DNA of 64,000 nucleotides, taken from Octopus bimaculoides. Lineage: Eukaryota. Shown here one piece after another: positions 12,642 to 64,000 of this stretch. Each line of letters opens with the position of its first letter. Position 1 is the first letter of the stretch. The stretch lies in contig NC_068990.1 of the NCBI RefSeq assembly GCF_001194135.2, positions 16,319,660 through 16,383,659 of the forward strand, read 5' to 3'. The position numbers and the translations under genes were made by a program. The notes beneath the pieces were generated by a model that was not told the DNA's origin, did not search any database, and saw nothing but the letters and a program-made list of their open reading frames with translations.

Positions 12642-12690
<49 letters not shown>

Positions 12691-15436: not shown

Positions 15437-15468
15437 TTTATTTATTTATTTTTCAATTTCTTCCCCAG

Positions 15469-15635
15469 GTCTCAAAAAACCGAAGCAAGAGAACATCGTC
15501 AATGAATCTCTGGTTGGAAGAAAAGGTGTTCCACCCAGGTTTACAACATTCACTCCTTATCCATTCTCTAAACAAGATGGATTAGTTTCAAATGTAATTT
15601 CTGTAGATAAAAATTTACCCCTTGAACAAGGCTGA
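15469..15635 (+). CDS. Sulf1: Candidate main terminal Sulf exon (SLKKPKQENIVNESLVGRKGVPPRFTTFTPYPFSKQDGLVSNVISVDKNLPLEQG*)
   Basis: Acceptor ttcaatttcttccccag; open for 54 codons in the phase required by the 8166-8283 exon; followed by long AT-rich UTR-like sequence. Confidence 0.65.
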
Positions 15636-19730: not shown

Positions 19731-21129
19731 TCAAGCATATTCATGTTAACTTAATTGTCAGTTAAATCCAGAGAATATATTGACAAAAAGTCATTTTCAT
19801 TTTCAGGTTTTCTTCTGATATTTCAAAGTATGGTGTCTGTGTAGATACGTATATGTGTCACCATTATTGCAACGATAGGGGCTAGCATCTTTCCCAATAT
19901 CACTTCTTGCAGTGCTAAGCCATAAATATTGCATTGTACTTTCTATGCACATTTCTCAGCAGCTTTGTATATTTTGCATTTCAATAACAACTTGAGAAAG
20001 CCTCTTCATGTCTGCCTTGGCTCAAGGAGATTTCCTACAGTGAGACAAATACAAATGTTTGCAAGAAAAGTAATATTCCCCCCATGGTCAGGTAAGTTTT
20101 CACAGAAGATGGGGGAATATGCACTATCTGTATAATGACAATACTTATTGGCAACAACAATGTGATGCAAAAACAGAAGACATACAAAAATTATACATAT
20201 ATATAGAAAATGAGAAATAATAGGCTTAATATTGCTTTCAAAAGCATAAGTGGTTCCAAGAAAAGTGAAATAGTTTTGACCAGTGAAAGAATGCTGTGGC
20301 ATTAGTTTTCCCAGAACTTCCTCATGCTTTACAACACTTGCCACATTAAAGTGGTTAATACTAAATTATTTTTTCTTTGTGGATTGATCAACAATAATCA
20401 CAAACAGTTGACCGGTCTATTGATACCAAGACAATGAAAAATGGGAACTGTGACTGACATTCAGACTTTTTCCAAAAAGATAGTAATAATGAAGGGGTGT
20501 TACAAATGATATTAGAAACTGGATTGCAGAATCTGTTCACTGCAAGCTCAGAACTGTTAGAGCTAGAAGTAAAATGTTAAAAGCATAATGTTTGTATTTT
20601 ATGTAAATGTGCCTGCATTGAATAGACATGGGAGGTGAGATGAAATATTTGATATGGTTAAGCAGTTTGCTTACCAACTTACGGTTATAGATTCAGTACC
20701 ACATTTGTCTATCTCTATACTAATTGTTGTTCTTTTTTAAAGTGATGTCAAGACTCTAGAGATGACCGAAATACCATAAGCTTTACTGTACCTACAGCTG
20801 TTGAGGTGGGAATAACATGACGTTAATGATTCCGATCAAGGGAGAGAAGTCCGAAGTTCAAATTAAATATTGAACAGGAGGTGAATACAATGTTGAATAA
20901 ATCTGACCTTAGTCTGATAAAGCAACCACTTATGAGAACTTGGATCTAAGATGGCTTAAACAGAAATTACCTTAGGATGTCTTCTAAATGAAGTCTAGTA
21001 TTTCACTGTTTTGTTTTTAATATCTTTCACTTGGTGTCCACTTTTAAGTGGATAATTCATGCTTCAAATAAAAAAAAAAGGAGAATTTGGTCTGTATTAG
21101 AAAGAAATTTGTAATGAAAGTGGTAGAGA

Positions 21130-21588
21130 TGATGACTTAAAAATTACACAGTAATTAATATATGGGTAGTAACATTAACATCAAGAGGACAAAACAACTA
21201 CACCTTAAAAATTATCGCAGCACTACAGAAGTGAGTTGCCTCCCCTCATTCAGAGTAATTTAGTTATCTCCCATGAAAATATGACTCAAATTACGGGAGA
21301 TAACTGCGTTCGTTACAGTTGCTACTTTCGAGCTAAGTCTTAAAAATGATTAAAAAGCACACTGAATAGAAATACAAGAGAGCCACATCTGGAATACTTT
21401 TTAATCTGTTAGTCTACTCTATTTCTAAAGCATTAAGTCTTTCTTCAATACTTTCATTTGTATTACGTAAGTAAAATTCAGTCTAATTTTCAAGTCTGCA
21501 GAGAAGTAGGTGTTGTCTGGTTCTCGGTGGCTGACTTATGACTAAACAACAACTCTATGCTTCAGCAATTCTGAACATGAAAGTAAGT
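21130..21588 (+). promoter_or_regulatory. Mildly CpG-enriched unique region ending in ATG AAA|gtaagt (candidate first exon)
   Basis: About 7 CG in 400 nt; ATG at 21577 and a consensus donor at 21583. Confidence 0.3.
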
Positions 21589-21689
21589 TTCCAAATATCA
21601 TGGGTCTGCACTATTTTTTCTTGTAGCAACATCAAGGAAGATTAACTGGGAAGATAGCTTTCATGTGCAGCAGATGCACAGGGGCAATA

Positions 21690-22330
21690 AACACCACAGA
21701 TACTCAGAAAACAGATTCCATCACATGCCAGGGGGAGAAACCGGAAGTAGTTGATACCTTCTGCTACCTAGGTGACCAAGTCTGTAGTTGGGGTGGATGC
21801 TCAGAGAATAGCTACTAGAATAAGAATAGCCTGGGCAAAGTTCGGAAAGCTTCTACCCCTACTGGTGACAAAGGGCCTCTTGCTCAAAGTGAAAGGAAGA
21901 TTGTACTATGCATGTGTGCGAACTGCCATGCTTCACGACAGTGGAGCATAGGCCATGACTGCTGAAGACATACATAGGCTCGAAAGAAATGAAGCTAGTA
22001 TGATCTGCTGGATGTATAATGTCAGTGTGCACACACAACAGAGTGTAAGCAGCTCGAGAGAAATGTTGGACATTAGAAGCATCAGATGCGGTGTGCAAGA
22101 GAGACATTTGCGTTGGTATGGTCATGTACTATGGATGGATGAGAAGAGCTGTGTGAAGAAGTGTCACTCCCAAACAGTGGGAGGAATCCGGGGTAGAGGG
22201 AGACCAAGGAAGACATGGGATGAGGTGGTGAAGCATGATCTTCGAACGTTGGGCCTCACAGAGGCAATGACAAAAGACTGAGACCTCTGAAGATATACTG
22301 TGACTGCGAAGACCCGGCAAATAAAGCAAG
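21690..22330 (+). mobile_element. RTE-clade LINE 3' fragment (RT C-terminus)
   Basis: Peptides FCYLGD, RIAWAKF, ERNEASMICWM, LRWYGHVLWM, RGRGRPRKTWDEVV; stops present. Confidence 0.9.
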
Positions 22331-22399
22331 TTCACAGCTGTATCCTACACCAGTTTCGCATAACCAGCTCACTCAAAAGTACCTTGGATCGTAGGGCAA

Positions 22400-22710
22400 C
22401 ATGTTGTACTTGAGGAGACCTATTGAGTCAAGTACATCAGCATCAAAATCAAATGGAAATTGTAGCTGTGATCCCTGTGCCGGTGGCACATAAAAAGCAG
22501 CATCCGAACGTGGCCGATGCCTGGCCCCTGTGCTGGTGGCATGTAAAAAAAGCACCCACTACACACTCGGAGTGGTTGGTGTTAGGAAGGGCATCCAGCT
22601 GTAGAAACACTGCCAGATCAGACTGGAGCCTGGTGCAGCCTCCTGGCTTCCCAGACCCCTGTCTAACCCATACCAGCATGGAAAACGGATGTTAAACGAT
22701 GATGATGATG
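22400..22710 (+). mobile_element. RTE-associated 3' repeat (GGCACATAAAAAGCACC modules, (GAT)n tail); related copies at 1500-1660, 13640-13810, 31980-32160, 33960-34140, 43380-43570, 54230-54420, 61400-61620, 62930-63100
   Basis: Directly follows the RTE ORF end; shared AGGAAGGGCATCCAGC.GTAGAAAC...CCAGCATGGAAAA.GGA.GTTAAA tail. Confidence 0.75.
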
Positions 22711-22744
22711 TCTACAAGTAATAGAAACACTGAATTTAAAAATT

Positions 22745-22960
22745 TTGCCCCAAAGTTGTTATTGGAAAGATAAAGGATAATCTTTTGTACTTCTACAAAG
22801 TCAGCCGCTGGACGTCAACGCTTGAGTGTGTTAACACCTAGACAAGTAAGACGTTCAGAGCAATGGAGGGCATTCATCTGGCTGCACATTTCTGGACAAC
22901 TTCCAGTAGATTGGATATTCTAGACAAGATACTGGTACCAAATGCAAACCATAACTGTAA
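22745..22960 (-). mobile_element. CR1/L2-like LINE RT 3' remnant
   Basis: Minus translation LLEVVQKCAAR*...SERLTCLGVNTLKR*RPAADFVEVQKII resembles LExVQRRAT...ERLxxLGLxTLxxRRLxADLIEVYKII. Confidence 0.65.
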
Positions 22961-23695
22961 ACATACCATAACCATCATTCAACTACAGTAGTAGTAGAAT
23001 AATATTCTTAAGGCTGCAATTTACTCACATGCAGCATCTTTCAGAGCTTGTTGCTCATTCAGTTCTTAACCAAATTGAAAACTTAACATTTTTGAAGATG
23101 GCTGGTCCCCAGCCATTTTGAAAAGCCATATTTTGACGTTAAAAAAAAATTGAGATTTGATCCAGTAAAAAAAAATTTACATAAGAATTTGTAGCAACAT
23201 TATAGGACAGTAAGTAATGCCACCAATCAAGTTTAGATCTAAATAACTTTTTATTTTAAAAGCAAAATATATTTATCTTAGCTTCAAGGATAGAAGAAAG
23301 CATGGAGAATTTTATAGTTTTGGTCTCATGCAACAAAAATTTGTATCAAAAAAGTTGTGAGGTAAAATATCATGAAAAAAAAAATATAAGGAAGAAAAAA
23401 ATATTAAAAATTATTTTAAAAACAAACTATATTTTAATTAAGCTTAAATGATAGAGCTCAATTCAAGGAATTTCATGGCATCAATCTCATGCAATGAAGT
23501 TTTAAAAGAAAAAAGTTATGAGTGCTTGTTTCTGAATCTTGAGGGTGATAATATAGTTCTATGCTTTTTTATGAATATAGTTCTATAAGGGGACTTTTAT
23601 ATATGTCACCGGTAAGGACATAATTATCAATGATATCGCTAATTGACACATTATTAATTACCATAATAGCATAGCCTGGAAAAAAACATGGATTA

Positions 23696-31375: not shown

Positions 31376-31529
31376 NNNNNNNNNNNNNNNNNNNNNNNNN
31401 NNNNNNNNNNNNNNNNNNNNNNNNNNNNNNNNNNNNNNNNNNNNNNNNNNNNNNNNNNNNNNNNNNNNNNNNNNNNNNNNNNNNNNNNNNNNNNNNNNNN
31501 NNNNNNNNNNNNNNNNNNNNNNNNNNNNN
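31376..31529. other. Assembly gap (others: 40554-40563, 51272-51394, 53361-53456, 56217-56226)
   Basis: Runs of N. Confidence 1.
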
Positions 31530-40180: not shown

Positions 40181-41016
40181 CAGCATTTTGCCTGGCAGGC
40201 TAATGACTCTGCCAGCTCACCACCTTGTTGTTGTTGTTGTTGATGGTGATGATGATGATGGTGATAAAATGAGGTGTGAAATAAAAAAGACTGGAAAAGA
40301 GTGCCCTGGTGTATCCCACTTGTAAGGTATCTTGCAAAAGGCTTTACTGTGGCATTAGGGCTGTTAAATAGTTATTGATGAATAACATTTGCTGGGCTAT
40401 GTGTTACAATCAGACATTTTGCATTAAAATTTAATGTGTCATGTTCAACTATCCATGAACATCTCAAGTAAATTAGGAAAATATGCAAAGAGGGAATTGG
40501 GGTCCCACATGAGCTTACACTTGAGAACCGAACACAATGTTTCACAATCTGCANNNNNNNNNNTCATGTAATTGTTTTTTGCCAGTACCAAAAACAAAAC
40601 AAGAACTCCATCCACAAACATACTTGCTCTGTGTTTGGTGAAATATGAAAAGTATTGTCCATTATAAGCCACTGGTACATTGAAGGATCATCAATACAGA
40701 TGTCTATTGCCAATAACCTGATTGTGTAAATGAGAAATTTATGATGAAAGTGGCCAGCTTTGGTAGACAGGAAAGGTGTTATTCTCTATCATGACAGTTC
40801 ACAGCCACACTCTTCAAAACAAACCCAAGAAAAAATAAGATCATTAGGATGGGAAATTCTTCCACATCCTCCATACTCATCTGACTTGCACCTATGGATT
40901 TCTATCTGTTCCAATCACTAGAACATTTTATAAGAGGCAAAACATTCAGAAACAGAGAGGAAGTTGAAAACAGTCTTTCAGACTTTTTTCCAGAAAAAGA
41001 AATAGGTTTCTTTGAA
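40181..41016. repeat. Left arm of long inverted duplication (partner 50744-51750)
   Basis: Identical to the partner outside N gaps over 40181-40873, then about 90%. Confidence 0.92.
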
Positions 41017-41388: not shown

Positions 41389-41478
41389 TTGGCTACACAC
41401 CAGTCTGATTGGTTGAGTCATATTTGCATGGTGACAAATTTTTTTGTAACTGGCAGTCTGGTAAGCCATGGTCCTGAC
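41389..41478 (-). CDS. Exon of minus-strand gene (VRTMAYQTASYKKICHHANMTQPIRLVCSQ), with ACCATGG at 41469
   Basis: cttatgtttctcag| ... CAA|gtgagt; 90 nt, phase 0 to 0, compatible with the exons on both sides. Confidence 0.6.
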
Positions 41479-44400
41479 CTGAGAAACATAAGCACTATGG
41501 TTGAAAACTCAGCAGCAACATCACTGCAAGTGATATGAAAGTGCCAAAAATATATATACCTAAATTTTGAGGCTCTAAGCTTCAGCCTACCAATCTATAA
41601 ATAAACCTGGCACTGAATGCAAAACAAGAGAAATTCAAATTACAATAATTCGTTTGGTTTCAGCATTATAGATATTCTGGTCCAAACTCCAAAATCTTTC
41701 AAATAAATAAAAAGTGCATCTGAAGCATATCTAGTCTTTTGAAAATTCTGTTTCCTGCCTTTTTTTTCAAATTGCTATAACTCTCTTATGACCTTATCTA
41801 AAATAAAGTACATTATCCATTATGGATTCAGCAACATAACAAAACCCAACATCATCAAAGCTGGTCTTTGAAACAACTTAGCATGAAAATTATGATTAGA
41901 AGGCTTATACTTAAATACAAACACTTCAAAATGCTCAATTTTGTATTTTTGTGTTACAAGACAAAAGCAGTGTCACACAGGTTGATATCAAAAGAGATAA
42001 GTACACACACATATATAATGTGTGTGTGTGTGTGTGTAAAGAGATGATGCATAAGGTATAAAAAATATATATATTGACAGTAATTGATAGTTCAATTCAG
42101 AATAGATCATTAGAGGCCAGCACATTATAACTGCAGTAAATCCAGTGGAAACAGCTTGTATGTCTACATATAATTAGCTAAAATGTTCTTTAAGAGCAAA
42201 ATATATTTAGAATAAAGGGCAAAAAAAAAAATGGATTTCACAGATAAATCATAAAATAGCTGTTGGAAGTAATTAAATCATGATCTGCGTATGAAATTTA
42301 TACTTTTCTGTATGGCTACGTGGATGAGAAACTTGCTTCCTGACCACTTTATGGCACCTTGGGAAAATGTCTCCTACTGTATAGACTTGGGCTGATCAAA
42401 GCCTTGTGAATGAATTTGGTTGATGGAAACTGAATGAAGCTTATCATGTGTGTGTGTGAGTTGATGTCTCTTTGTCTAGACATTGCATTATTGTCATAAA
42501 TGAGCATCACCATCATACCAGTGGTGACCTTCATTTCTTAACTTCTGTGAAAACATGCTTAGCCATGGAGAAATATTACTTTACTTTGAAACAAGTGAGG
42601 GTTAGTGACAGAAAGAACATGCAACTTTAGAAAATCTGCCTCAACAAATTCTGTCTGACCCATTTAATCATAGAAAGGTGGATGTTAAAATGATGATGAT
42701 GATATCATCTTCAATTTTTTAATATCCACTTTTCTGGAATTTACTGAGGCAAATTTTCTATAGCTGGATGCTCTTCTTATAACCAACACTCACTTGATTC
42801 CAGGCAAGGTAATATTTCCCCATGGTTAGACATATTTCTCATGGGGGAATAGAAAATGCCACTTGTATGATGGTGATGCTTGTTTACACCCATCACATGA
42901 TGTCAAGACAAGGGAACTCAGACACAAATAGACATGAGCACATGCACACACACACACACACACTATGGGTTTCTGTCTACCAAACTCACTCATTAGGCTT
43001 CATCAACCTAAGATTATAGTAGAAGTCACCTGCCTAAGGTGTAGCACAAGAGGACTGAACCTGAGAGCACATGGTTGAGAAGCAACCGCTCAACCACACA
43101 GCCACACCAGTACCTAATATATAACACACACGTGTGCATGTAACTTTACCTACCCATTCACCCTGTCTGATCCTGTTCTGCTTCTCTTATATTTCCCATC
43201 CTGTACCTTATAGGTATATCCTGACACCTTCACCACCATCTTTCTCTCTTTCCTACTGGGATAGTCATGTATCTCCTCTACAACAACACATCTGTTCCTG
43301 TCCCTCTATCATACTTTAACTCTTCAACTCCTACCGTAAAGCCATCTCCCTTAATAATACACTCCATTCAGTTGAGGGGTCTTGTCTTATGAGTTACTTG
43401 ATGACCTCACTAGTGCCAGCAGCACAGAAAAAGCACTTGGTACACTCTGTGGTTGCAATTAGGAAGAGCATGCAGCCATAGAATCTAAGTCAAAGTAGAC
43501 ATTGGAGCTCAGCATAGTTCTCTTAACTCATTGGTTCCAGGCAAATTGTCCAAACCATGCCAGCACAGAAAATGGTGTGATTGATATATAATACTATACA
43601 CTAACCTTGTTCATTCATGCTGGAATACATGCATCTTTTCTTTTCAGGGTGAGGGTGGGAGGGGGGATGGAAGTGAAAAATCCAATTTTAGGTGAAGGAC
43701 AAAAGAAGTTGAGAAACACAGATATAGAGTTTAGATGAATAGCTCTTCAACTAAACAGAAAAACTTTCCTTGTATAATAATAATCTCCTAATATAATAAG
43801 GAGCATAGTGTTTTTATATATTTGTATTCTTTTATTCTTTTTTCTTTTACTTGTTTCAGTCATTTGACTGTGGCCATGCTGGAGCACTGCCTTTAGTCGA
43901 GCAAATCGACCTCAGGATTTATTCTTTGTAAGCCTAGTACTTATTCTATCGGTCTCTTTTTTAAACTGCTAAGTTACAGGGATATAAACACACCAGCGTC
44001 GGTGGTCAAGTGATGTTGGGGGGACAAACACAGACACACACACTCATATATATATACACGATGGGCTTCTTTCAGTTTCCATCTAACAGATTCACTCACA
44101 AGGCTTTGGTCAGCCTGAGGCTATAGTAGAAGACACTTGCCCAAGGTGCCACACTGTTGGACTGAACCTGAAACCATGTAGTTTGGTAAGCAAGCTACTT
44201 ACCACACAGCCACTCCTGCACCTATATTTATATATTTGTCCAAAATCATACAGGATGGTGAAGGGAGAGTTAGAGAAAATAGTAATTCAGTGAAGAAGTG
44301 AGAATAATAGCCATGACTGAGAGGGAGTAAGAGAAAGTAATAGCAACGAGAGAGAGGCAGTGGCAAAGAGAGTGTCATGCGTCTTCTTTCTCTGTCACAA

Positions 44401-45349: not shown

Positions 45350-47060
45350 ACATCTCTCCTTGACAACATACTCCTCACCTCAAACCTCTCTGAAGTCATT
45401 GTCTTTGGTAACTTCAATGTCCACAACTTGTCTCAGTTCTCTCACACTCATCTCATACTAATGCTGCCAAAGTAGCAACTAAATTTATCACAATCATTAT
45501 CATCATCATCATTTAACATCCTTCTTTCATGCTGGCATGGATTGGACTCTACAATATTTTTCATTCCTCTCTATACATCTATGACCAACACCACCCAAAC
45601 TGCAGTTAATTGCTTTGGTTCCAACTATGTGGAATCCTCCATCCCATCACTTCTCATCCATTATGTTTCTTCTATAAGCAGTACTCTAAAGTGAACACAG
45701 TTGCAGCTCACTTTACATGCAACTCCACTCTACATATACAAATTTCTCTTACTTTGCAAGGATATAAATTTTTGGAGATATGTATAGTATGTTCCCCTCC
45801 TAAGATAGTCGACTCATTTGATCCTGCCAACTATCATCCAACCATACTCATTCTCAACATCTCATAAGTAATGGAAACACCTATGAACAACAACTTTCAT
45901 CACCTTTAATCTCTCTCCTTAATTCTTTTTATAACAAATCAGTCCAAGAATGTCCTCAGTTCTGTGAAATAAAATTCCTGTTTTAAAGAAATCTAAATTA
46001 ATAGATTCCATCGAAATTTCATGTTAATTTATATTCCAAACATCAACTTAATAATGACAAAGTTATTCTACTAATATCTTCATTATTTTCAAAATTAATT
46101 GAAACAAAGTGTATTTCAACAGAAATATAGTACCAAAAAGTGCATGGAGAGCCAATAAGGCCTTTGTGAAGCTAAATCTCCTTTATGTCAGTCATTAGTG
46201 AGTTCTCACCCTCGAGAAATGTGTTAGGTAGAAACAATATTGTTGGCCTTGACAGTAAAGCTTTTGACCAGGCCTGACACGTAAATCTCTTACTAGAATT
46301 GCATGTCTATGGATGCTGTTCATTTCTCATCTCTTTCATTTGACAGCTTCCTGTCAGATCACACAAGCATGTACTAATTGTACTCACTCCAACCTCCCGC
46401 TATCAACTCTAATGTGTTCAAGATTTGATTTAGTCCCACCCATCCGACATACATCCTTCCCTCAATTCATCAATGACCTTTTTGACATTACTTCCATGAA
46501 CACCTGGTCTTACACAGATAATAATATTCTTCATTCCTCCCTAACCTTTCAAATCCAAGGGTTATCCACACATAACCTAGATACCAGATGCTAAAACTTA
46601 TACAGAAACTGCTAACATATCTTTCAATGGAGTCTTTCACCACCACTAAGACTCTATTGTCCCAAACCTGAAGAACAAGCAACTAGAAAAATACAAGGTT
46701 GCTCCTAATGCTAGATCTTACCATCAATGAGGATTTCTTTCTTAAAGAATGTACATCCTCAACTTAGCAAAGAGTGAATCACTAAGACTTGCCTTTCTCT
46801 TCAGAAATGAAAAGTACTTCTCACAACAACTTCATGACCTTCTACAAAGCTTGGGTGAAACCCAAGGTAAACATTATTCCCACATTTGGGATATATTGCC
46901 AGGATCGCCAAGACAAATTTTGCAAGGTGACACAAGGTTGCTTTTGGGTCCCACCTGGGAAGCAAAGAGATCTCCGCTACTTCCAGTCAGAAATTTACAG
47001 ATAACCCTGCTTTCTTGGATCTGAGTATCAGACCAATAAACAAGCTGAACCCATCTCTCA
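45350..47060 (+). mobile_element. Decayed CR1/Jockey-like LINE ORF2 (endonuclease and RT pieces) interrupted by a MITE
   Basis: EVIVFGNFNVHN; FINDLFDITSMNTWSYTDN (YADD-like); TFYKAWVKPK. Confidence 0.65.
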
Positions 47061-47269
47061 GAGGATTTGATAAAGTACCTTACCAGTCAATACAACCACT
47101 CCCAGAAAATGTGTAACTATGTGTCTACGAATCAATGTTGTATGAAAGACAATCTGGACATGGTTTGTCACTGTAACAAAATGTACCTCACAGTCCTTGC
47201 CATTAAATGTTCAATAATCCTCCAATCATATTTACAACCCCGCTTTTCAGAACATTATTTCACCCCCCC

Positions 47270-47899
47270 CCCCTCGGACAGTAAAGCCAAATATGAAAAT
47301 ATAAAATGTTAAACAAATAATTCCAAAAATATTTTGTTTATTGATCGACCAGATCAAAATAAATAATTAGACGAAGTTTAAAATGGCTGAAGCAACGAAT
47401 ATGTTCTAAAATAAAAAAATAAAAAGGAAAATATGTCATTGAGAAACGCCAGAACGAAGTCTTTATGAACACACGATAATAACGGTTTAACTGTTACAGC
47501 TTAAAACAGGAGAGAAAAAAAAATCTTCGAATTTATTATTTGCATAAAGAATTTATCAACAAATACGTTTAATATTTGGACGATATAAACTTAGTATATT
47601 TAAAAGATTATATGTTGCAGCAAACAAAATGGCGCTAGATTATTTATTACTGATGCCGTATTTAATATCAGACTGCAAAAACAAACTAAAGATTAATTCA
47701 TTTTCACTGTAGAAACTTCTCAAGCGATAAAGTAGTTATCTACAACTACGATAAAATTATGAAATGATTTGACATTTTTATTTAAAACGCTTTTAGTGTG
47801 GGGATAGCGAATAATGGCAAATAGTTCCAAGACAAAGGATTCTATCAGGCATAAAGATAACGCTTCATTTTTCAGTTGTCTGGGCGAAGAACCTTTTCG
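47270..47899. promoter_or_regulatory. CpG-retaining promoter-like region with YY1-type AAAATGGC motifs
   Basis: About 20 CG by eye in 630 nt versus about 8 in 1-1000; AAAATGGCG at 47626-47634 and AAAATGGCT at 47380-47388. Confidence 0.5.
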
Positions 47900-49198
47900 A
47901 TGCTGAAAAAGTTTAAGTTTACACATTTAGAGGTAACAGCAACGAAGTTATCGGAAATTATTAACTATGGCCCAATTACAGAGTTTGATTCTTTTATGAA
48001 GACTCTAGTTAGCCCGGCAGATATTTGCACAACGATTGACTCCAATGGAGAAACTCCTTTACACACTAGTATTCAGAAAAGCAGGATGGAGTGTTTGAAA
48101 AAGATGCTGGAGCTAGACCTCAATATTAAGGCAAGAAATAACAAAGGCTATACACCGTTAAGTTATGCCTTGCTTTATGGACATATGAAAATAGCAAGTC
48201 AATTTATCGAAAAAGGAGCACAAGTTAATGAAATATGTGTACGAAAGACAGGTAAAACACTACTCCAGAAAATGGTAACGATAAATAAACTGGAAGCAGT
48301 ACGGTTCCTTTTAGAAAATGGAGCTTTGGTTAACAAATGCGATGAATCTGGTATGGCACCACTACATATGGCAGTGATTAGCGGTCATAAAACAATTGTC
48401 AGTATTTTGTTGGAATTCGGTGCGAATATCAACCAAATAAATAAATTTGAACAATCTCCTCTTCAACTTGCCATCCAGATGAACCAGCCTGAAATGAGCA
48501 AAATTCTCATAAATAATGGCGCCAACCTTTTGATGAAGGATAAAGCCGATAAAACTATACTCAACGTGTCTGCTTCTGTTGGGAATGCAGAAATATGCAG
48601 GCAAATATTGAGACAAACTTCTGTAAATATCGATACCAAAGAAAAACTGTTGGGTCGTAGTCCATTACACACAGCCTGTGCCGTCAGAAGTTACCCTGCG
48701 GCAAAATTGCTTATCGATTACGGAGCTAACATTAAACTATTGACTAGGAATCGTAAGGCTCCCATCAATATTGCCACACAAGCCGGTAGCGCAGATATAG
48801 TGAAAATGTTGAAAGAAGAGTCAGAATTACTGGAAAGAAAATCACATCGTAAAACTCCATTGCTATTAGCTATTGACCAAGGTCACTTACAAATAGTTCA
48901 ATATATTATTAATTCGAAAGGTAGTGTCAACTCCAAAGATGTGAATGGTGCCACTCCACTCCATTATGCTGCAAAGAATGGTTTGTTTATGTTTGTGAAA
49001 ATATTTATTGAAAACGGAGCCGACGTCAACGCTAAGGACAAAAGAATGAAAACACCACTTCATGAAGCTTTCATTTATGGACATGATAAGGTAGCGAATT
49101 ATCTCGTCGAAGTAGGGGCCGACCTGCATTGTGTGGACGACATTCAAATGTCACCATTCGATTATAAAACATTGCAAAACATGTGGTCAAATAAACAT
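47900..49198 (+). CDS. Ankyrin-repeat protein, large exon with 11 ANK repeats plus a partial 12th
   Basis: ORF with repeated G.TPLH.A...G...IV..LL..GA..N motifs. First ATG at 47900; acceptor-like catttttcag at 47874-47875 opens the same frame at 47876; donor CAT|gtgagt at 49198/49199 (phase 0). The unspliced ORF would end at 49273. Confidence 0.93.
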
Positions 49199-49593
49199 GT
49201 GAGTGATATTTCTAACGAAAACATTTTCATATTTATTCCGCAACCAGTTATGTTGGTTCTATTTACTAACTAATCTCACTTGTAGTGCTTGATTCGAACA
49301 TGTATGGCTAATTAACGCTTAGTTAACTTTTATGCTCCTACAGTCGCTCCTCCAAGTTATGACAGTTTCTCATAACTTCGAAAAAAGCTTCTCAAATTTT
49401 TACTTTCCGAGCTTAGAAGATTAAGATAGATATATTCCTGCAAACCTCGCCCTCCACCTATACATGTATATTATATAATTATTTGAAGGATATAAATACC
49501 TCTGAAAGGGATGTCAGCATCCAAATTCCCCGGTTTTATCCAGTGTATCAATGAAATACTGAAAGATGTTAGCTTCGCATTGATGGATATAGG

Positions 49594-50010
49594 GGTAATC
49601 TTCCAGTTTAGGGAGGTAAAAAAAGTAAATAAAAATACAAGGGAAATAACTTAACGTCTTACTAGTATTATCCGTACTCTCCCCACCCCACCCGTTCGCG
49701 AGCGCGCATTTTTTTCTTCATATTCGTTCACAGCAAGTTCTTTTACACCTATTACACAATTTTTTAATTTTTATTTTTGAGCTCGGGTCAAACGCTTTAG
49801 TTTGACCGTTATTTCCCTATACTGGAAGATTACCATAAGTTGTTGTGCAGCCGGTACAATGATATTCAATCACGTGTGTGATTTATATATAAACAGTTAA
49901 CTTTCAATCACGTGTGTGATTTATTTATACGGATAATACTAGTTAGACGTTAAGTTATTTCCCTTGTATTTTTATTTACTTTTTTTACCTCCCTAAACTG
50001 GAAGATTACT
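49594..50010. mobile_element. 417-bp MULE/Mutator-like MITE with 82-bp TIRs and 9-10 bp TSD
   Basis: 49595-49676 vs 49928-50009 are reverse complements with 1 mismatch; (T)GGATATAGG at 49584-49593 and 50010-50019. Confidence 0.85.
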
Positions 50011-50263
50011 GGATATAGGTATCTTATCGGTGATTGGTAATAAAGTCACAATTAATTTATGGGATCCGGACAAAACCTATGTGACTTTATTACTGTGATT
50101 TTTTTTTTTACCTGGATTCATATTTTCATTTATGTGTAAGAAAATGAAAACGGAGAAATCAATTTATTAAAACAAATGCAATTTCATACAATGAGTTTCA
50201 TATTGTTTGAAACAGGATTTGTTTTAATAAATTGATGTCTATATGTCAATTTCTCTGTTTCGT

Positions 50264-50303
<40 letters not shown>

Positions 50304-50342
50304 TAATGAAAAAATGCATTGTAAATAAATGACATAAAAATC

Positions 50343-50394
<52 letters not shown>

Positions 50395-50396
<2 letters not shown>

Positions 50397-50693
50397 TCTT
50401 CCGGTGCGTCATGTGTCAGCCCAAGGAGACCACCATTAAAAGACAAACAGTGAGCCTCTACAACTTGAAGTCGCATGTCAAGAGGCAACACCCAGTGCAT
50501 GTCATCCAGTTTGAGGAGAGGATCAAGGCCAGCTCTTCCCATAGGAAACACAGGCAATCTTCTTGTAGCTGTGCTTGTAGGCAGTCATCACAGCCATGTG
50601 CAAAGAAAGCACACCAGCCCAGCATTGGTGAGGCACTTGCCCAAACTGCTGGCACTGGTGTCTGTCAGACAGAAGGATTGTAGACCTGTTTAG
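50395..50693 (+). mobile_element. hAT (Tol2/Ac-like) transposase N-terminal BED zinc-finger fragment
   Basis: FRCVMCQPKETTIK...SLYNLKSHVKRQHP (C2H2 BED pattern); after a frameshift DRRIVDLF. Confidence 0.7.
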
Positions 50694-50729
50694 CCTGGAA
50701 GAGATGAAGAATTTTTTGCTTAGGCATAA

Positions 50730-52443
50730 ATTTATGCCACATTCAAAGAAACCTATTTCTTTTTCTGAAAAAAGTCTGAAAGACTGTTTTTAACTTTCTG
50801 TTTCTGAATGTTTTGCCTCTTATAAAATGTTCTAGTGATTGGAACAGATAGAAATCCATAGGTGCTAAGTCAGATGAATATGGAGGATGTGGAAGAATTT
50901 CCCATCCTAATGATCTTATTTTTTCTTGGGTTTGTTTTGAAGAGTGTGGCTGTGAACTGTCATGATAGAGAATAACACCTTTCCTGTCTACCAAAGCTGG
51001 CCACTTTCATCATAAATTTCTCATTTACACAATCAGGTTATTGGCAATAGACATCTGTATTGATGATCCTTCAATGTACCAGTGGCTTATAATGGACAAT
51101 ACTTTTCATATTTCACCAAACACAGAGCAAGTATGTTTGTGGATGGAGTTCTTGTTTTGTTTTTGGTACTGGCAAAAAACAATTACATGATAACCATTGT
51201 TTTCTTTTGTGATGCAAAACCCATTTTTCATCACCTGTAACAATGCACTGCAGAAATAACAGGTTGTTATTNNNNNNNNNNNNNNNNNNNNNNNNNNNNN
51301 NNNNNNNNNNNNNNNNNNNNNNNNNNNNNNNNNNNNNNNNNNNNNNNNNNNNNNNNNNNNNNNNNNNNNNNNNNNNNNNNNNNNNNNNNNNNNNTGTGTT
51401 CGGTTCTCAAGTGTAAGCTCATGTGGGACCCCAATTCCCTCTTTGCATATTTTCCTAATTTACTTGAGATGTTCATGGATAGTTGAACATGACACATTAA
51501 ATTTTAATGCAAAATGTCTGATTGTAACACATAGCCCAGCAAATGTTATTCATCAATAACTATTTAACAGCCCTAATGCCACAGTAAAGCCTTTTGCAAG
51601 ATACCTTACAAGTGGGATACACCAGGGCACTCTTTTCCAGTCTTTTTTATTTCACACCTCATTTTATCACCATCATCATCATCACCATCAACAACAACAA
51701 CAACAAGGTGGTGAGCTGGCAGAGTCATTAGCCTGCCAGGCAAAATGCTGGTTTTGGTGTTGACACTGCCCTCTTGTTACGTGATAACCATTGTCTTTTT
51801 CATTTTCTGTTGTGATGCAAAACCCATTTTTCATCACCTGTAACAATGACTGTAGAAAAAACTGGTTAGAAGACTGCTGCAAATGGTGGAACGTTGTGTT
51901 TGGTTCTCAAGTGTAAGCTCATGGGGAACCCAAATTCCTACTTTGCATATTTTCCCAATTTGCTTGAGATGTTCATGGATAGTTGAACATGACACATTAA
52001 ATTTTTGTGCAAAATCTCTGATGCTTTGACGTAGATCTGATACAACAGTCTCATTCAAAAGGTTGTCCTTCAGAGTGGGTCATTTTCCTGGGCAAGGCTT
52101 GTTGGATGTGTCACTGTTGCCATCTTTAAACCTTTTAAACCCCAGCTGACATGCACAAGCTTTCACTGCATCTAGATACACTTCACAAACGTTTTCATTG
52201 CTTCTGTAGCAGTACTTTTCTTTCAAAACTCATACAGTAAGCAATGACAAATATGTTCTTTCATAAAGTTCTTATTCTCTAAGAGGTTAATTACCGAAAT
52301 AACTGAATGACACTCTACCGGACAGAAGAGATGATATACTATTTCTAGACAGTTCCCACCCATTTGACCTTGGCTCTGATGTGATTAGTTGATTTATATT
52401 TCATAGAGGTGAAAAAACGCAATTACTTTCTGAAAACCTTAAT
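50730..52443 (-). mobile_element. Composite mariner: 5' TIR and N-terminus (52443-51751), templated insertion, 3' catalytic region
   Basis: TIR AAACGCAATTACTTTCTGAAAACCT|TA; VGIWVPHELTLENQTQRSTICSSLL; HPPYSSDLAPMDFYLF. Confidence 0.88.
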
Positions 52444-52488
<45 letters not shown>

Positions 52489-52576
52489 TGCACACACTCT
52501 CTCTCACATACATACATGCTCCATTTATATCATCCATTTATTTTTTAAGAAATAACAATACTCTGCATATTTACAG

Positions 52577-52663
52577 AGAACAACATCCAGCAAAATTCAA
52601 TGTATTATAGACAAATGGAAAAAGAAAACTTTTCTCAACCAAGCAAGAAGTTGGAACATGTAA
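52577..52663 (+). CDS. Probable second coding exon of the ankyrin gene (RTTSSKIQCIIDKWKKKTFLNQARSWNM*); exon continues to a donor at 52673/52674
   Basis: catatttacag acceptor; the phase-0 reading ends at TAA 52661-52663; CTG|gtaagt 10 nt later. A phase-1 frame is also open through the whole exon. Confidence 0.55.
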   Translation, partial: RTTSSKIQCIIDKWKKKTFLNQARSWNM

Positions 52664-53283
52664 AGGACTTCTGGTAAGTTTTGGGATTGTTTTGTATTTT
52701 TTGTTGCTGTCATGCATGTATAATGTGTGTATGTTATGTTAATGCTTGATTTTATTAGAAGATTGAAGCTTTTGTGGTGAAGATGGGGCTAGTAAGAAGA
52801 GAGCTTGGTGTTTGATGACATGAAGCATCTATCTAGGGAATGATGCAATGTGATATCTGTGATGTCATTTGTATATAATGCTGTGTGTCTGTTTTGTGGT
52901 GAGGAGGTGAGGTCCTGAAGGTTAAATTGAAAAGAACAAACAAAAGGATGGCGCCTTTCCATACACATCATCATCATCATCCTCATTGTTACTTTAACAA
53001 TGGTTTGACAGAATTCCTCAAGGCAGATTTGATTTTTTTATGACTAGCTACCCTTCATCCTGTAGCCAATCCCCACTTGTTTCCAAGCAAGGTAATATTT
53101 CCCTGTGGTTGGAATATGTGCATAAAGATTAATATTTTGGGATACATGTCTCATGATTAGAATTTTTTTAGGGTGTGTAAAGAGAGAAAGAACCCTCATG
53201 TGCAATTTTGATGAAATTCGAATCATATCTATTCCAGTTCCTTACAGAATATATAAGAGAAAAGTCTCATCCTTCAATTGCAT

Positions 53284-53360: not shown

Positions 53361-54828
53361 NNNNNNNNNNNNNNNNNNNNNNNNNNNNNNNNNNNNNNNN
53401 NNNNNNNNNNNNNNNNNNNNNNNNNNNNNNNNNNNNNNNNNNNNNNNNNNNNNNNNTAATAGATACAGACAATTAGTGCCCAGACCAGACCATATACCTA
53501 AAACCCAATGACAGATAAAGGGAGATGGAATCCAGGCAAATTACAAATTGAGTTAATGAAAATACAATAGAACAAGATATAAGATGGACAGGCTGTTGTG
53601 AAATGCATCAAAGCTTTTATAAAATACTTATACAAAAGTGAGTTTAAATTGTATGAACACTCACCCTATTTTCATGTACATTTGCTAATGCTAATCTACT
53701 TCATATATATGTATTTACAATGCACAATACTGCACTTAATGAGCACCAAACCACAGAAACAGCTGTAAAGGTTTACTTGTGTTCTCCACCCTCTTACTTG
53801 TGAGGTTCAAGTATGAACTTTCTTGATATTTACCTGCCTACCCATGAAGAACCACTACAAAGGACTACATGAACTTTTAGGTAGCTTTGCAGATGGTAGT
53901 TGAAATTATGTAAATTTTAAGGAATTCTTTGGTTACAGAAGATATCATATATATCCACTGTGTAAGTTTTTCTGTCCCCACCATAGTGCTACTCACCTCA
54001 CACTTTGAAAGTCCACACATATACCCCATCACCTCTTTTTATCTCTTCTTCACTCAATCCTGAACATTCCTTGCCTCACATCTCAAATGTGAGTAGCTAC
54101 GTGCCCCCCCCCCCACTCTACTACAAAAAACGTGTTCTGCTCTGGCCCTTCTCTCATACCTTAACCCCTCATCTCCAAGCATAAAGCCACCTCTCCTGGG
54201 GTTTGTAATTTTGCAAGATGCACAGTAACCTCACTTGTGCTGGTGGCATGAAAAATACACCCAGTATACTCTGTATAGTGGTTGGTGTAAGGAAAAGCAT
54301 TAAGCATAGAAACCATGCCAAAGTAAGACATTGGAACATGATGCTGTCCGTGGACCAATCCAACAACCCATACCAGCATGGAGGAAATGATGATGATGAT
54401 GATGATAATGATGATGACTAGTGTATTTATTTGAAGCTGGGTATGTTGGTTTTTGATGTAAAAGTTGGAGTCATGAAGCCTTGCCTAGGGAGTGGTGGGA
54501 TGAGATATAAATGTAAGATCATTGTGTAAATTTTGTGAGGAATACAGTGATGTTGTTGAACCAATCCATGACAGCATGGAAAATGATGATGATGTACTGC
54601 AGTATCTACATTTGTATTTTCCTCATGTTGCCAAATGTATTCATAAGAACCTCCATAACCTCTGGTACAAAACAAAGGTGACTTAACACCTGTTTTCATT
54701 TAGTTTCCTGTTTATTTCTGTTACACTCATATCATGTGTGGCTAAACATAATGGCTGTAGAGGTGATAATGGTGATGTCTGTTATTCAAGTCTTCAAATA
54801 TTTATAGAAAATGTTGTTTAATACTTAC

Positions 54829-54972
54829 TTCACTGCTACTTTGCTTAACTAATTCTTTATTGCTTTTATAAATGCAAAGTTTGGATTTGTTGGTTCTTGC
54901 AGAAAAACTTCTAAATGGACTCCTTAGACAGCTTCGCTCTACTTTCTCAAACACTAAACTTTCTGAATATTC
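54829..54972 (-). CDS. Internal exon of minus-strand gene (EYSESLVFEKVERSCLRSPFRSFSARTNKSKLCIYKSNKELVKQSSSE)
   Basis: tttacatttacttgcag| ... GAA|gtaagt; 144 nt open, phase 0 to 0. Confidence 0.75.
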
Positions 54973-55399
54973 CTGCAAGTAAATGTAAATCAGAAATGTA
55001 ACATTACTACTTAGTGTTGCCAGCATGAGATGCCTATGGCAGTAGTAAACTAAGGAAGATGAGCCAGTGAGAAGCTGCCAAATCTCTCACAAAGTCCCAC
55101 TGCTAAAATAACATGTTGGATTATGCAGTTTGGAGTACACTCATCATCATCAATGTTCATTTATCCAGGCTTGCATAGGTCAGACAGTTTGTTGAGACAG
55201 ATATTCTACATCTGAGTGTGCTTCCTGTTGCCAACCTTTACCTGTTTCCAAGCAAACTAATATTTCCCCATAGCCAGACATGTGTTTCACATAAAACTGG
55301 TTGACAACCATCACACAATGTCAAGACATGACAGTGCACACACATGCGCACAACACATGCATGCACACACACAATATAATGACATGGTCTTGGTTATTT

Positions 55400-56470
55400 G
55401 TCATTGCCTCCGTGAAGCCCAGCACTTAAAAGGAGCTTTTCACGTGCTATTAGCTTTGGCCACATTGCCTCCGTAAGGCCCAATGCTCAAAAGGTGCTTT
55501 TTATGTGCCAGTTATGTGACACCAGCATCGGCCACAACTATGTTTTCCCTTGGCTTGATGGGTGTTCTCAAGCATTGCATATCGCCAAAGGTCTCGGTCA
55601 CTAGTCATTGCCTCTGTGAGGCCCAAAATTTGAAAATCATGCTTCACCACCTCATCCCATGTCTTCCTGGGTCTACCTCTATCACAAGTTCCCTCCACAG
55701 TTAGAGATTGGAACTTCTTTACAGAGCTGTCCTTTTCCATGCACATCACATGACCATACCAGTGCAGTCATCTCTCTTGCACACCACAGTCAATGCCTCT
55801 CATGCTCAACTTTTCTCTCAAGATGCTTATATATATATATATATATATGTACACATATCTTTGGGCCTCACCGAGGCGATGACTACTGACCGAGACCTTT
55901 GGAAATGTGCTGTGTGTGAGAAGACCCGGCAAGCCAAGTAAGATCGTTGCCAGTGCCCCTGGACTGGCTCTTGTGCGGGTGGCACATGAGATGCACCATT
56001 TTGAGCGTGGCCGTTGCCAGTACCGCCTGACTGGCTCCCGTAGGATTTTCGAGTTAGATCGTTGCCAGTGCCCCTGGACTGGCTTGTGCGGGTGGCACAT
56101 AAAAGACACCATTTCGAGTGTGGCCGTTTTCGTGCGGGTGACACGTAAAAGCACCCACTACACTCTCTGAGTGGTTGGCGTTAGGAAGGGCATCCAGCTG
56201 TAGAAACTCTGCCAAANNNNNNNNNNCCCCTGGACTGGCTTGTGCGGGTGGCACATAAAAGACACCATTTCGAGTGTGGCCGTTTTCGTGCGGGTGACAC
56301 GTAAAAGCACCCACTACACTCTCTGAGTGGTTGGCGTTAGGAAGGGCATCCAGCTGTAGAAACTCTGCCAAATTAGATTGGAGCCTGGTGTTGCCATCTG
56401 GTTTCACCAGTCCTCAGTCAAATGTCCAACCCATGCTAGCATGGAAAGCGGACGTTAAACGACGATGATG
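55400..56470. mobile_element. Divergently oriented RTE 3' fragments (55400-55830 minus; 55860-56470 plus) joined at (TA)n
   Basis: Both encode LGLTEAMT.DRDLW; the plus copy is CpG-rich and carries tandem modules. Confidence 0.8.
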
Positions 56471-56564
56471 ATGATGATGATGATATATATATATATATAT
56501 ATATGCTATAGCCCCAACCAACCGTGGACTTGGTGAATGGAAACTGATGTAGATATGTGTACAT

Positions 56565-56602
<38 letters not shown>

Positions 56603-57943
56603 GGAAAGCGGACATTAAACGATGATGATGATGATGATGATATGTACACATATCTACATCAGTTTCCATTCACCAAATCCACTCACAAGTCTTTGGTTGG
56701 TTGGGGCTATAGCTGAAGACACTTGCCCAAAGCACCATGCAGTGAGACTGAACCCAAGACTGTGTGGTTGAGAAACAAGCTACTTAATCTCACAGCTATG
56801 TTTGTGTACAGACTTAGAAAAGAACTCCAAAATGACTGGAAGTTTTTTTTTTTTTTAATCTTTTTAATCAGGAGGGAAGGTAGTGCCCTCAACTTTTTAC
56901 AAAGCCTTGGAGACTTTAGGTGGGAGGGAAAGAAGGCGGAAAGTGTCCTTGAACTGGAAGCCTGGCCAGAATGCTTGCAATAGAGTGGATTCTATTAAAG
57001 GTAGCCAAGTAGTGGTGTTAAACTGGGTATTGGGTTAAGTCTGCCACCCAGATAGACCATGGTGGGACTTGAAATCAGACTACAAAAACCAAAACAAATT
57101 TACAAGGCATCTAATCTACTGTTCTTACAATTCTACCAATTGATTGCCTTTGGTTTTGTTTTTTTTTTATCAATCCTGACAGGATGAGACTCAAAGTACA
57201 CCTTGGCTGAATTTGAACTTAGATTGCAAAGTTGAAATAAATATTGGCAGAGCATTCTGTCTGACTCTGCCAGTTTACTGGTAGTTCATAGATCTGCTCA
57301 GTCATGGCTGATTTAGGGACTAAACAACTAACAAAGACTTGGGTGACACAACTGAGAGAGTTCAGAACTAGGAATTCTGAAGAGCTATAAACCCATCCAA
57401 CCCATGTTTATTATGACACTGAGGCCTATCTATTGGAACCTGGATATGACTGGAGAAATTTTGCAAGAATTATTAATCAGACAACTCTACTAATATGGAA
57501 ATGTTATATTTCTGGATGATAATGCTTAGTATTTGTGAAAGAGAGTGACATTATTGTGTGGGTGAGAAGTTCACTTCCTAACCATATGGTTTCAGTTTCA
57601 ATCCCGCAGCATGATACATCAAGCAAGTGACTCTTACTATAACTCTGAACTGATCAAAGCCATGGAAAACAGGAAAGGTTTAGTGTCAGGACAGACACCC
57701 AATTGTAAAAAAGATGCTTCAGATAATAACATATTTGTCCAACCCATGCAAGCATGGAAAAACAAACATAAAACAAAATGAAAAAATTGAATGAATTGGA
57801 TGGTATAAGATGACATGAGGTGACAATAGTAAAGAATAGCTAAGGAAGAGAGATAGCTTGAAGTAGCTTTCTGGCATGAAATACTTATACTAATACATTG
57901 TTCTCTTAATATTTTCACACGTATGTAAATTTCAAATTAAGTT

Positions 57944-63207: not shown

Positions 63208-63889
63208 CTTGACGAAGAAGAAGAAGAAGAAGCATAGCAAAAATATTTGAAAATATTGTATTCCTTGCATTGAAGTCTGTGTGGTTTAGAAGTTTTGCTT
63301 AGCATCCACATGGTTCTGAACTGTCTCTCAATTCATGTTATCTTGAAGCATGTGTTTTCTACCAAACCTTTGGCTCAACTCAACTTTTGTGAATGAAGTT
63401 GGATAGATGAAAATCCAACACCACCATCTAACCCTTGGGTTCCTTTAGCAAAATTCACTGTTACAAATATTTGAATTCAGTTCCCATTCTGATGATAACT
63501 TAGTTTATTCGTTTGCTTCTTCCTGCTATTGCAAACTCATGAGTCATGGTTTCTTGCCCCACCCTAGTCTTGGAGGCCTGCCGAAAATGGTGATGAGTTT
63601 CACTCTTCCCCTCTAACCATGCTATAATTAATATTCAGAAAAAACTTCATTTAGGATTTTATCTGCAGCTTTGGCTTAACTTGTGGGGAAGAGGAAAGTC
63701 CATTCAAAAGACTGTGTTCCCTGATTTAAGACCGCCTACTGATCCTTGGGTGCTTTTAGTAAAGTGGAAATGAACCTAGAACCATGAAGTGAATTTCTTA
63801 ACCACACTGCCATACCTGTTCCTAAAGAATAAAAGCATACATAAAAATACAAATATGAGATGTAAAAACAGTTTTGAGTTGCAAGTTTA

Positions 63890-63911
63890 TCTATATATAT
63901 AAAAATGAGAA

Positions 63912-64000
<89 letters not shown>
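63890..64000 (+). mobile_element. Helitron/Helentron-like 5' end with (CTGT)n microsatellite, running off the window
   Basis: A|TCTATATATATAAAAATGAGAATG followed by (TCTG)n. Confidence 0.55.

Follow-up and report, generated by a model that had tools for sequence, protein, structure and literature searches.

Tandem 33-residue helix-turn-helix repeats with TPLH and GADVN consensus motifs form the arrays of ANK1/2/3, NOMPC and TRPA1 and of the designed ankyrin repeat proteins (DARPins), and intronless, consensus-like ankyrin arrays with no accessory domain occur as effectors of Rickettsiales, Legionella, poxviruses and giant viruses. Metazoans also have nested genes, complete small genes that lie on the opposite strand within the introns of longer ones. 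In Octopus bimaculoides, methylated CpG dinucleotides are concentrated within certain genes, in introns and exons alike, while transposons and the DNA between genes are comparatively unmethylated; the largest gene class of this species (methylation pattern 4; 17,586 transcripts) is unmethylated and consists of shorter genes that are silent or expressed at low or variable levels (Macchi et al. 2022, PMC9476566). Here we set beside these systems an ankyrin-repeat gene on the plus strand of a 64,000-nucleotide stretch of O. bimaculoides DNA (contig NC_068990.1, positions 16,319,660 to 16,383,659; ‘the window’, from whose first letter all coordinates are counted), where it occupies a CpG-rich block in CpG-poor surroundings. 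An earlier note on this DNA had proposed that the gene stems from an intronless donor, either a retrocopy or a bacterial or viral ankyrin gene, that landed in the intron of a minus-strand gene, stayed unmethylated and recruited a host 3′ exon.

The octopus protein shares its repeat type with ANK1/2/3, NOMPC, TRPA1 and the DARPins, but it has 11 repeats in 461 residues and is without ZU5, UPA, death, channel or toxin domains. Like the bacterial and viral effectors, it is encoded by an intronless, consensus-like array that lacks an accessory domain; it differs from them in that it shows no specific affinity, has a host-like composition, uses a spliceosomal donor and has been inherited vertically across at least three octopods. 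The gene resembles the pattern-4 class (PMC9476566) in being short, in being CpG-rich in both promoter and body, and in its sequence signature of a long-term lack of methylation; its membership of that class is putative, being assigned from its sequence, and its strongly depleted setting gives an unusually sharp contrast. As with metazoan nested genes, this is a complete small gene in the annotated span of a longer one, although searches for the flanking exons of the octopus host found none and the annotation of a sister species is without nesting. With a probability of roughly 0.75, we consider the ankyrin gene to be a bona fide single-copy gene that is restricted to octopods.

Its coding parts are these:

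47900 to 49198, plus strand: single coding exon of 433 codons, in which an N-terminal lead of 49 residues is followed by the 11 ankyrin repeats and then by a partial C-terminal cap.

49199 to 52576, plus strand: intron of the annotated two-exon model, from GTGAGT to TTTACAG; the junction matches the sequence of XP_014785273.1.

52577 to 52663, plus strand: small 3′ coding exon of 87 nt, 28 codons plus TAA, whose translation is the C-terminus of XP_014785273.1.

49199 to 49273, plus strand: read-through tail of 24 codons plus TAA that begins at the GTGAGT donor, and that forms the C-terminus if the intron is retained.

The large exon belongs to a 470-codon stop-to-stop open frame (47861–49270, plus strand) whose runner-up in the whole 64-kb window has 191 codons, and the first ATG of this frame is at 47900. 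No introns interrupt the 433 codons, and their translation is 100% identical to XP_014785273.1. The donor GTGAGT at 49199 stands directly after codon 433 and joins in phase 0 to an acceptor, TTTACAG/AGA, at 52577, after which there follow 28 codons and TAA. Together, 47900–49198 and 52577–52663 match residue for residue the 461-residue XP_014785273.1 (UniProt A0A0L8I965, ‘ankyrin-3-like’); the locus returned for this accession, CM046610.1:16357559-16382322 of GCA_001194135.2, corresponds to window positions 37900–62663 and is identical in sequence. The uninterrupted plus-strand exon with 11 ankyrin repeats that the earlier note described is real, as the 470-codon frame, Pfam, manual parsing and an AlphaFold2 model all agree, and its phase-0 link from GTGAGT to a small exon at 52577 is exactly that of the public model: this is an already annotated gene and not a new one. 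No mention of XP_014785273.1 or of related protein accessions was found in the literature. The intron contains a miniature inverted-repeat transposable element (MITE), microsatellites, a mariner-like copy and an assembly gap; as this gap (51272–51394) lies within the intron, the continuity of the frame across it is irrelevant to the gene.

The island in which the gene sits, at 47240–50260 and minus the 416-bp MITE, comprises 2605 bp with 71 CpG and an observed/expected ratio (o/e) of 0.93. The CpG o/e is 0.186 elsewhere in the window, 0.20 and 0.14 in the two 5-kb flanks, and 0.22 across the full window. The highest-ranking 2-kb sliding windows for CpG all fall in the island, which is the only sustained exception in the window, and the decay product of CpG, TpG/CpA, has an o/e of 1.12 in the island versus 1.34 outside. 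The several-fold CpG excess that had been claimed for the exon and its upstream region is therefore upheld (0.93 over 2.6 kb versus 0.19). The island spans from 660 bp 5′ of the ATG to approximately 1 kb 3′ of the read-through stop, and since it extends past the exon on both sides, it covers the whole of a small transcription unit, including two non-coding parts:

47240 to 47899, plus strand: CpG-rich upstream region, candidate promoter and 5′ untranslated region (UTR); CpG o/e 1.35, compared with 1.38 in Octopus vulgaris and 1.40 in a third octopod.

49274 to 50260, plus strand: CpG-rich downstream part, candidate 3′UTR of the unspliced form; AATAAA at 50039–50044 and 50226–50231.

The upstream region, for which promoter function is putative, is 96.0% identical to its counterpart in O. 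vulgaris, the adjacent CpG-poor intron being 93.8% identical, and an acceptor-like TTTTTCAG ends within it at 47875, 24 nt 5′ of the ATG. The downstream part, a presumptive UTR, is colinear with O. vulgaris as far as 50260 except for the MITE, and its CpG o/e is approximately 1.1 in both species.

Only two close relatives of the protein were found: CAI9728614.1 from O. vulgaris, with 83.6% identity over 433 codons, and a Logan-assembly protein from run SRR11869384, the third octopod, with 79% identity; the next matches in a word-indexed search are at 33% or less. The O. vulgaris locus is colinear with window positions 46353–50260 at approximately 94% identity, a stretch that takes in 850 bp of CpG-poor intron on the island's left side, and the sole interruption of this colinearity is the MITE, which is specific to O. 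bimaculoides. The ATG, the acceptor-like AG 24 nt 5′ of it, the uninterrupted repeat array, an identical GTGAGT donor and the CpG-rich island are common to the three octopods. From these alignments, the gene appears with the same structure in at least three octopods, and for two of them it is shown to be at the same locus. Contamination or misassembly of the island is ruled out by its colinearity between two independent chromosome-level assemblies, each from a different species. Beyond 50260, in the 10 kb of O. vulgaris DNA that was compared, synteny is lost to lineage-specific transposons: downstream of the orthologue, at 12240–14300 of the O. vulgaris locus, there is a Tc1/mariner-type element interrupted by an insert resembling a short interspersed element, and at 14700–16100 a fragment of a long interspersed element that bears a reverse transcriptase. 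Both are absent from the O. bimaculoides window.

The island itself is also of long standing. In O. vulgaris and the third octopod, respectively, the CpG o/e is 0.79 and 0.82 in the coding region and 1.08 and 1.12 downstream, alongside the upstream values listed above. Between O. bimaculoides and O. vulgaris, 104 of 124 island CpGs (83.9%) are conserved, versus 87.3% of all dinucleotides, whereas only 2 of 11 CpGs (18%) were kept in the adjoining CpG-poor flank of 800 bp. As island CpGs are conserved like other dinucleotides and flank CpGs are not, the island would have been spared methylation-driven decay since the species split, and it shows what is expected of DNA that is unmethylated in the germline, namely an o/e near 1 and CpGs that are not hypermutable over time. 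These data point to a long-standing germline hypomethylation of the island and not to a recent landing. The claim that the gene ‘stayed unmethylated’ is likewise supported, in the form of a signature in the DNA, by the presence of the island in three octopods, by the conservation of its CpGs and by the hypermutable CpGs of its flank. A recent insertion with CpGs that are still undecayed would account for the five-fold CpG contrast and the sharp edges, but we give it practically no credence: the same gene and island are found between colinear flanks in O. vulgaris and again in the third octopod at a synonymous divergence (dS) of approximately 0.25, the CpGs of the island have not been lost in excess during this period, and the only young part is the 416-bp MITE. 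The sister-species island and the undecayed CpGs refute a recent arrival.

Bearing in mind that the CpG-rich, unmethylated state is that of the commonest gene class in O. bimaculoides, it is no mark of foreignness; the sharp contrast at the island is owed to the depleted surroundings, and a CpG-rich small gene is the default state. We envisage that the ankyrin gene would be transcribed from its own promoter within the 2.6-kb island (approximately 47240–50260), and that the island would have been free of germline methylation since before the divergence of the three sampled octopods. The surrounding DNA, most likely the gene body of a long minus-strand gene with constitutive transcription, would have been methylated and would have lost its CpGs. 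The ankyrin gene would behave like the large class of short, unmethylated O. bimaculoides genes with low or tissue-variable expression, and its product would act as an adaptor in protein-protein interactions. Whole-genome and reduced-representation bisulfite sequencing data for O. bimaculoides are public (PMC9476566).

The proposed landing of an intronless foreign or retrocopied donor found no support. An exhaustive profile-free scan of 1.84 billion representatives (E<=0.001) returned 387,646 ankyrin matches, among which none beyond the octopod cluster exceeds 43% identity. Matches from bacteria, fungi, insects and metagenomes all lie in the same background of 24–43%, and DARPin designs score equally well. 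The comparison with protein databases that the earlier note had suggested thus reveals no specific affinity to bacterial, viral or native parent proteins, and neither the word-indexed nor the exhaustive search produced an octopus paralogue or parent gene above this background. Hunting for a donor by similarity was uninformative, as giant multi-repeat proteins and artificial DARPins outrank meaningful relatives among the 387,646 matches. Furthermore, the amino-acid rate (a nonsynonymous divergence, dN, of approximately 0.11 at a dS of approximately 0.25) is such that a squid orthologue would be expected to be sunk in the repeat background, so the absence of non-octopod orthologues is itself uninformative. 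The GC content (0.38 in the coding region, 0.34 in the island and 0.35 in the window) is host-like; only the CpG content differs, which is attributable to hypomethylation and not to a foreign composition. At the island borders we saw no poly(A) tract and no target-site duplications, which is weak evidence given the age of the gene, and in the window we can see neither foreign genes nearby nor boundaries of an insertion. The best match, from O. vulgaris and thus within the genus Octopus, is an orthologue at the syntenic site whose single-exon structure is the same, a result that the earlier note had itself named as the sign of an ordinary old gene.

It is in this light that we consider an ancient horizontal acquisition, in which an intronless ankyrin gene from a bacterium (e.g., one of the Rickettsiales) or a large DNA virus was later given a spliced 3′ exon. 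Such an event would be in keeping with the intronless repeat array and with the failure to find orthologues outside octopods; many of the next-best matches are metagenomic or bacterial, and the O. vulgaris protein is named after RF_0381 of Rickettsia felis. That name, however, is an automatic best-hit label, and the 24–43% identity to all non-octopods, which is the same for insects, fungi, canonical ankyrins and DARPins, contains no phylogenetic signal for transfer. Considering also that the GC content of the island is like that of its flanks, that the locus is syntenic in two species and that the window is free of visible foreign neighbours and boundaries, we judge this acquisition to be very improbable. 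It would be a long shot, too, that an early octopod captured an ankyrin gene from a bacterium or large DNA virus and domesticated it, keeping it as a protected unmethylated island inside a methylated host gene and with a rapidly evolving binding surface; if true, cephalopods would here provide an example of an effector-like protein that was captured.

An old retrocopy, by which a processed transcript from some native multi-exon ankyrin gene entered an intron before the three octopods diverged, with its poly(A) tract and target-site duplications since lost, is also unlikely in our view. The coding region is intronless and apparently inside the intron of another gene, and an intronic location inside another gene is a common fate of retrogenes. 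On the other hand, no O. bimaculoides paralogue above approximately 43% emerged from either search, the poly(A) tract and duplications were not seen, and a retrocopy would not bring with it 660 bp of CpG-rich DNA 5′ of the ATG. The gene may first have arisen, among other routes, as a diverged duplicate of some native ankyrin gene or by an old retroposition, and a foreign source is not indicated.

The encoded protein belongs to the ankyrin-repeat family both by profile (Pfam) and by its helix-turn-helix solenoid (AlphaFold2). Ank_2 (2.6e-64, 214 bits; cut-off 27.3) and Ank (9.3e-62, 202 bits; cut-off 21.1) are matched, and Ank_3, Ank_4 and Ank_5 likewise exceed their curated cut-offs; the Pfam scan of the protein matched only ankyrin-repeat families and no other domain. 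Manual parsing of the sequence gives 11 full repeats and a partial cap. In the AlphaFold2 model, which was built from the three octopod orthologues, there are 11 consecutive helix pairs, with a predicted local distance difference test score of 80–95 over residues ~90–410 and a predicted template-modelling score of 0.66; confidence is low at the first 51 and the last 27 residues. The model shows that the protein would fold as an ankyrin-repeat scaffold; we take the product to be a soluble solenoid of 11 repeats.

The best matches among solved structures are to ankyrin-1 (5.7e-86), ankyrin-1/2 chimeras and DARPins, with NOMPC, latrotoxins and TRPA1 also among them. Matches to canonical ankyrins and consensus-designed DARPins alike are best read as generic repeat similarity. 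A canonical ankyrin exceeds 1500 residues and has a membrane-binding domain of 24 repeats, after which come ZU5-ZU5-UPA and death domains; assignment of the octopus protein to ANK1/2/3 is ruled out by its 461 residues and 11 repeats, and by the confinement of the ankyrin-1 match to the repeats. The database name ‘ankyrin-3’ is therefore misleading, in that it is a label of similarity and not of orthology.

Another aspect of the coding region is the selection that has acted upon it. Alignment with the third octopod yields no indel columns in 1299 nt, as compared with 87 gap columns in the ~560-nt upstream segment (47340–47899) and 16 in the ~260-nt downstream segment (49199–49460). The O. vulgaris coding region has one in-frame 3-nt length difference, and the frame is intact in all three species. 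The pairwise rates are:

O. bimaculoides and O. vulgaris: dN/dS 0.80, dS 0.10.

O. bimaculoides and the third species: dN/dS 0.45, dS 0.24.

O. vulgaris and the third species: dN/dS 0.40, dS 0.28.

Counted by parsimony, nonsynonymous and synonymous changes stand at 36:9 on the branch to O. bimaculoides, at 36:16 on that to O. vulgaris and at 67:44 on the one that remains; neutrality would give a ratio of approximately 3.75. Residues that vary are over-represented at positions 2, 3, 5, 13, 14 and 33 of the repeat (29/66, versus 76/300 elsewhere; Fisher p=0.004). We take these positions to be the binding surface, as in designed ankyrin repeat proteins. No variation among the three octopods was seen at the framework positions 8, 23 and 27. 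The overall picture suggests a folded, functional scaffold with a fast-changing surface, and we attach the same rough probability of 0.75 to this being an ordinary, fast-evolving (dN/dS 0.4–0.8), octopod-restricted ankyrin gene. It could be argued from the near-neutral 36:9 count that the O. bimaculoides copy is losing its function under relaxed constraint and is an incipient pseudogene; its dN to O. vulgaris (0.080), moreover, at least equals the intron divergence (~0.065). We hold this to be improbable, since the 433 codons are without stops or frameshifts, framework residues are kept, variation is focused on surface positions, the fold is confidently predicted, and the substitution counts for the branch are small.

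As to the gene's 3′ end, CAI9728614.1 and the Logan protein both read through the donor to a nearby stop. The resulting tail is 24, 21 and 14 codons long among the three species, and such variation in length argues that it is weakly constrained. In O. bimaculoides the intron-retained product would have approximately 457 residues, versus 461 for the spliced one. The AATAAA motifs at 50039 and 50226 are near the end of both the island and the interspecies colinearity. The small 3′ exon is found 2.3 kb past the island, in CpG-poor DNA (local CpG o/e 0.20) beyond lineage-specific transposons; it occurs once in the window, and there is a GTAAGT downstream of it at 52675. We propose that the ancestral transcript was probably an unspliced, single-exon one, to which the splice to the 87-nt exon at 52577 would be an added or alternative 3′ end. 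The suggested recruitment of a 3′ exon is plausible: the splice is in the public model and the exon is outside the island, yet the O. vulgaris model reads through the donor. Just 5′ of the second AATAAA, at 50154–50264, we also observed an imperfect palindrome of ~87 nt (80%), which is conserved at positions 11689–11798 of the O. vulgaris locus, and which could be a 3′UTR hairpin or the remnant of an old MITE.

The earlier note further placed the gene in a 13.3-kb intron of a minus-strand gene, for which the relevant features are:

37900 to 62663, minus strand: annotated host gene, minimum extent in the window (range from GCA_001194135.2); 873-residue product with weak leucine-rich repeat (LRR) hits.

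54829 to 54972, minus strand: upstream host exon proposed in the earlier note; open, with AG/GTAAGT borders; in no database protein and with no counterpart in the O. vulgaris DNA that was compared.

41389 to 41478, minus strand: downstream host exon proposed in the earlier note; open in O. bimaculoides; in no database protein.

All of the 24.8-kb locus that surrounds the ankyrin gene falls in the annotated range, and the two proposed exons have good splice-like borders and join in frame. Their joined translation, however, has no word in common with the 5.8 billion database proteins searched. The O. vulgaris counterpart of 41389–41478 differs in length by 2 nt and contains stops in each of the three frames; this segment is not a conserved coding exon. 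Another search, with a composite of 24 more open minus-strand segments that were long or splice-bounded and of the 18-residue start of the O. vulgaris neighbour, returned no protein; an LRR regular-expression scan and two simple splice-site scans for host exons gave nothing convincing. In the O. vulgaris annotation, a 246-residue minus-strand gene begins just upstream of the segment, and it uses the same CAG/GT boundary as a donor and not as an acceptor. Its 18-codon first exon, at 242–295 of the O. vulgaris locus (minus strand), corresponds to window positions 41479–41530 (minus strand); in O. bimaculoides its length there differs by 1 nt, so the gene models near 41.5 kb disagree between the species. 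What is left to carry the nesting is the annotated range of the 873-residue gene, within which the intron may be longer than 13.3 kb; alternatively, the host model may join two genes.

In the latter case the ankyrin gene would not be truly nested, but would stand between two minus-strand genes and head-to-head with one that starts near 41.5 kb. We treat this arrangement as possible, though doubtful. It agrees with the O. vulgaris annotation, in which the 246-residue gene starts from the counterpart of ~41530 and none spans the ankyrin gene, and with the absence from database proteins of the two exons and of the 24 other segments; it also removes the extra explanation that is needed if an unmethylated island is to persist in a transcribed, methylated gene body. 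Opposed to it are the O. bimaculoides annotation, which does span the ankyrin gene, and the state of the flanks: the loss of CpG to either side of the island is in keeping with a gene body that is methylated, and the strong depletion (0.14–0.20) together with the hypermutable CpGs of the left flank is, in this species, a gene-body rather than an intergenic signature (PMC9476566).

Several points weigh against our view of the locus as an ordinary octopod gene that is nested in a methylated host. Promoter activity, tissue pattern and methylation state are all deduced from the sequence. The lack of an orthologue outside octopods fits rapid divergence, yet it leaves room for a lineage-specific acquisition. 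Host exons were not found in the searches, and the O. vulgaris annotation has no spanning gene. Finally, the 36:9 count is close to the neutral ratio, and constraint may be relaxed on the O. bimaculoides branch.

The intron of the ankyrin gene and its surroundings also contain transposable elements and gaps, to which no strand is assigned:

49594 to 50009: MITE-like insertion of 416 bp, flanked on each side by a 10-bp duplication, TGGATATAGG, and with 82-bp terminal inverted repeats of 98.8% identity.

50742 to 51750: mariner-like copy that holds the gap 51272–51394; an inverted, near-identical twin of 40181–41016, with a weak DDE_3 hit.

51272 to 51394: assembly gap of 123 N, intronic and inside the mariner-like copy, which touches no coding part.

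The MITE has 16 CpG at an o/e of 1.34, and its site is empty in O. vulgaris, which makes it a young insertion in the downstream region of the ankyrin gene. Both flanks of the 123-N gap match the twin at 40181–41016 in the same order and orientation (98.2% and 100% by BLAST), and they also match a partial mariner-like copy at 51777–52022. The twins bracket the ankyrin gene, each is gapped at an equivalent internal point (40554–40563 and 51272–51394), and both are absent from the O. vulgaris DNA that was compared; they could be two young insertions of one family with a core that is hard to assemble, or else an assembly duplication.

We also noted that (TA)n/(TG)n microsatellites at 50250–50400 and 52430–52500 stand where the island and the interspecies colinearity end on the right, similar arrays being found at about 5.1, 12.6, 28.5 and 53.3 kb. 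Secondary spots of elevated CpG (o/e 0.4–0.57) are located at 15001–16000, 21000–23000 and 55000–57000. Those at 21.9–22.3 kb and 55.5–56.4 kb overlap retrotransposon-like frames that share a ‘...RGRPRKTWDEVVKHD...’ motif, and they coincide with a duplicated block around a 10-N gap at 56217–56226; the secondary spots are probably younger transposons and not promoters. Further assembly gaps (31376–31529, 53361–53456 and the one at 56217–56226) are not near the ankyrin coding parts. At 63739–63999 there is a tetranucleotide-type repeat whose minus strand reads (DRQT)n.

The locus itself is of modest interest, as an orphan-like, fast-evolving ankyrin scaffold that is confined to octopods. Its chief value is as a worked example of how, in an octopus genome, a CpG-rich block in CpG-poor DNA marks a gene that escapes gene-body methylation and not foreign DNA, and scans for horizontal transfer should not take such CpG contrasts as evidence of it. 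The unmethylated island has been stable across the divergence of three species even though it is apparently inside a methylated transcription unit, and it may serve as a test case for how invertebrate gene-body methylation is excluded from nested promoters.

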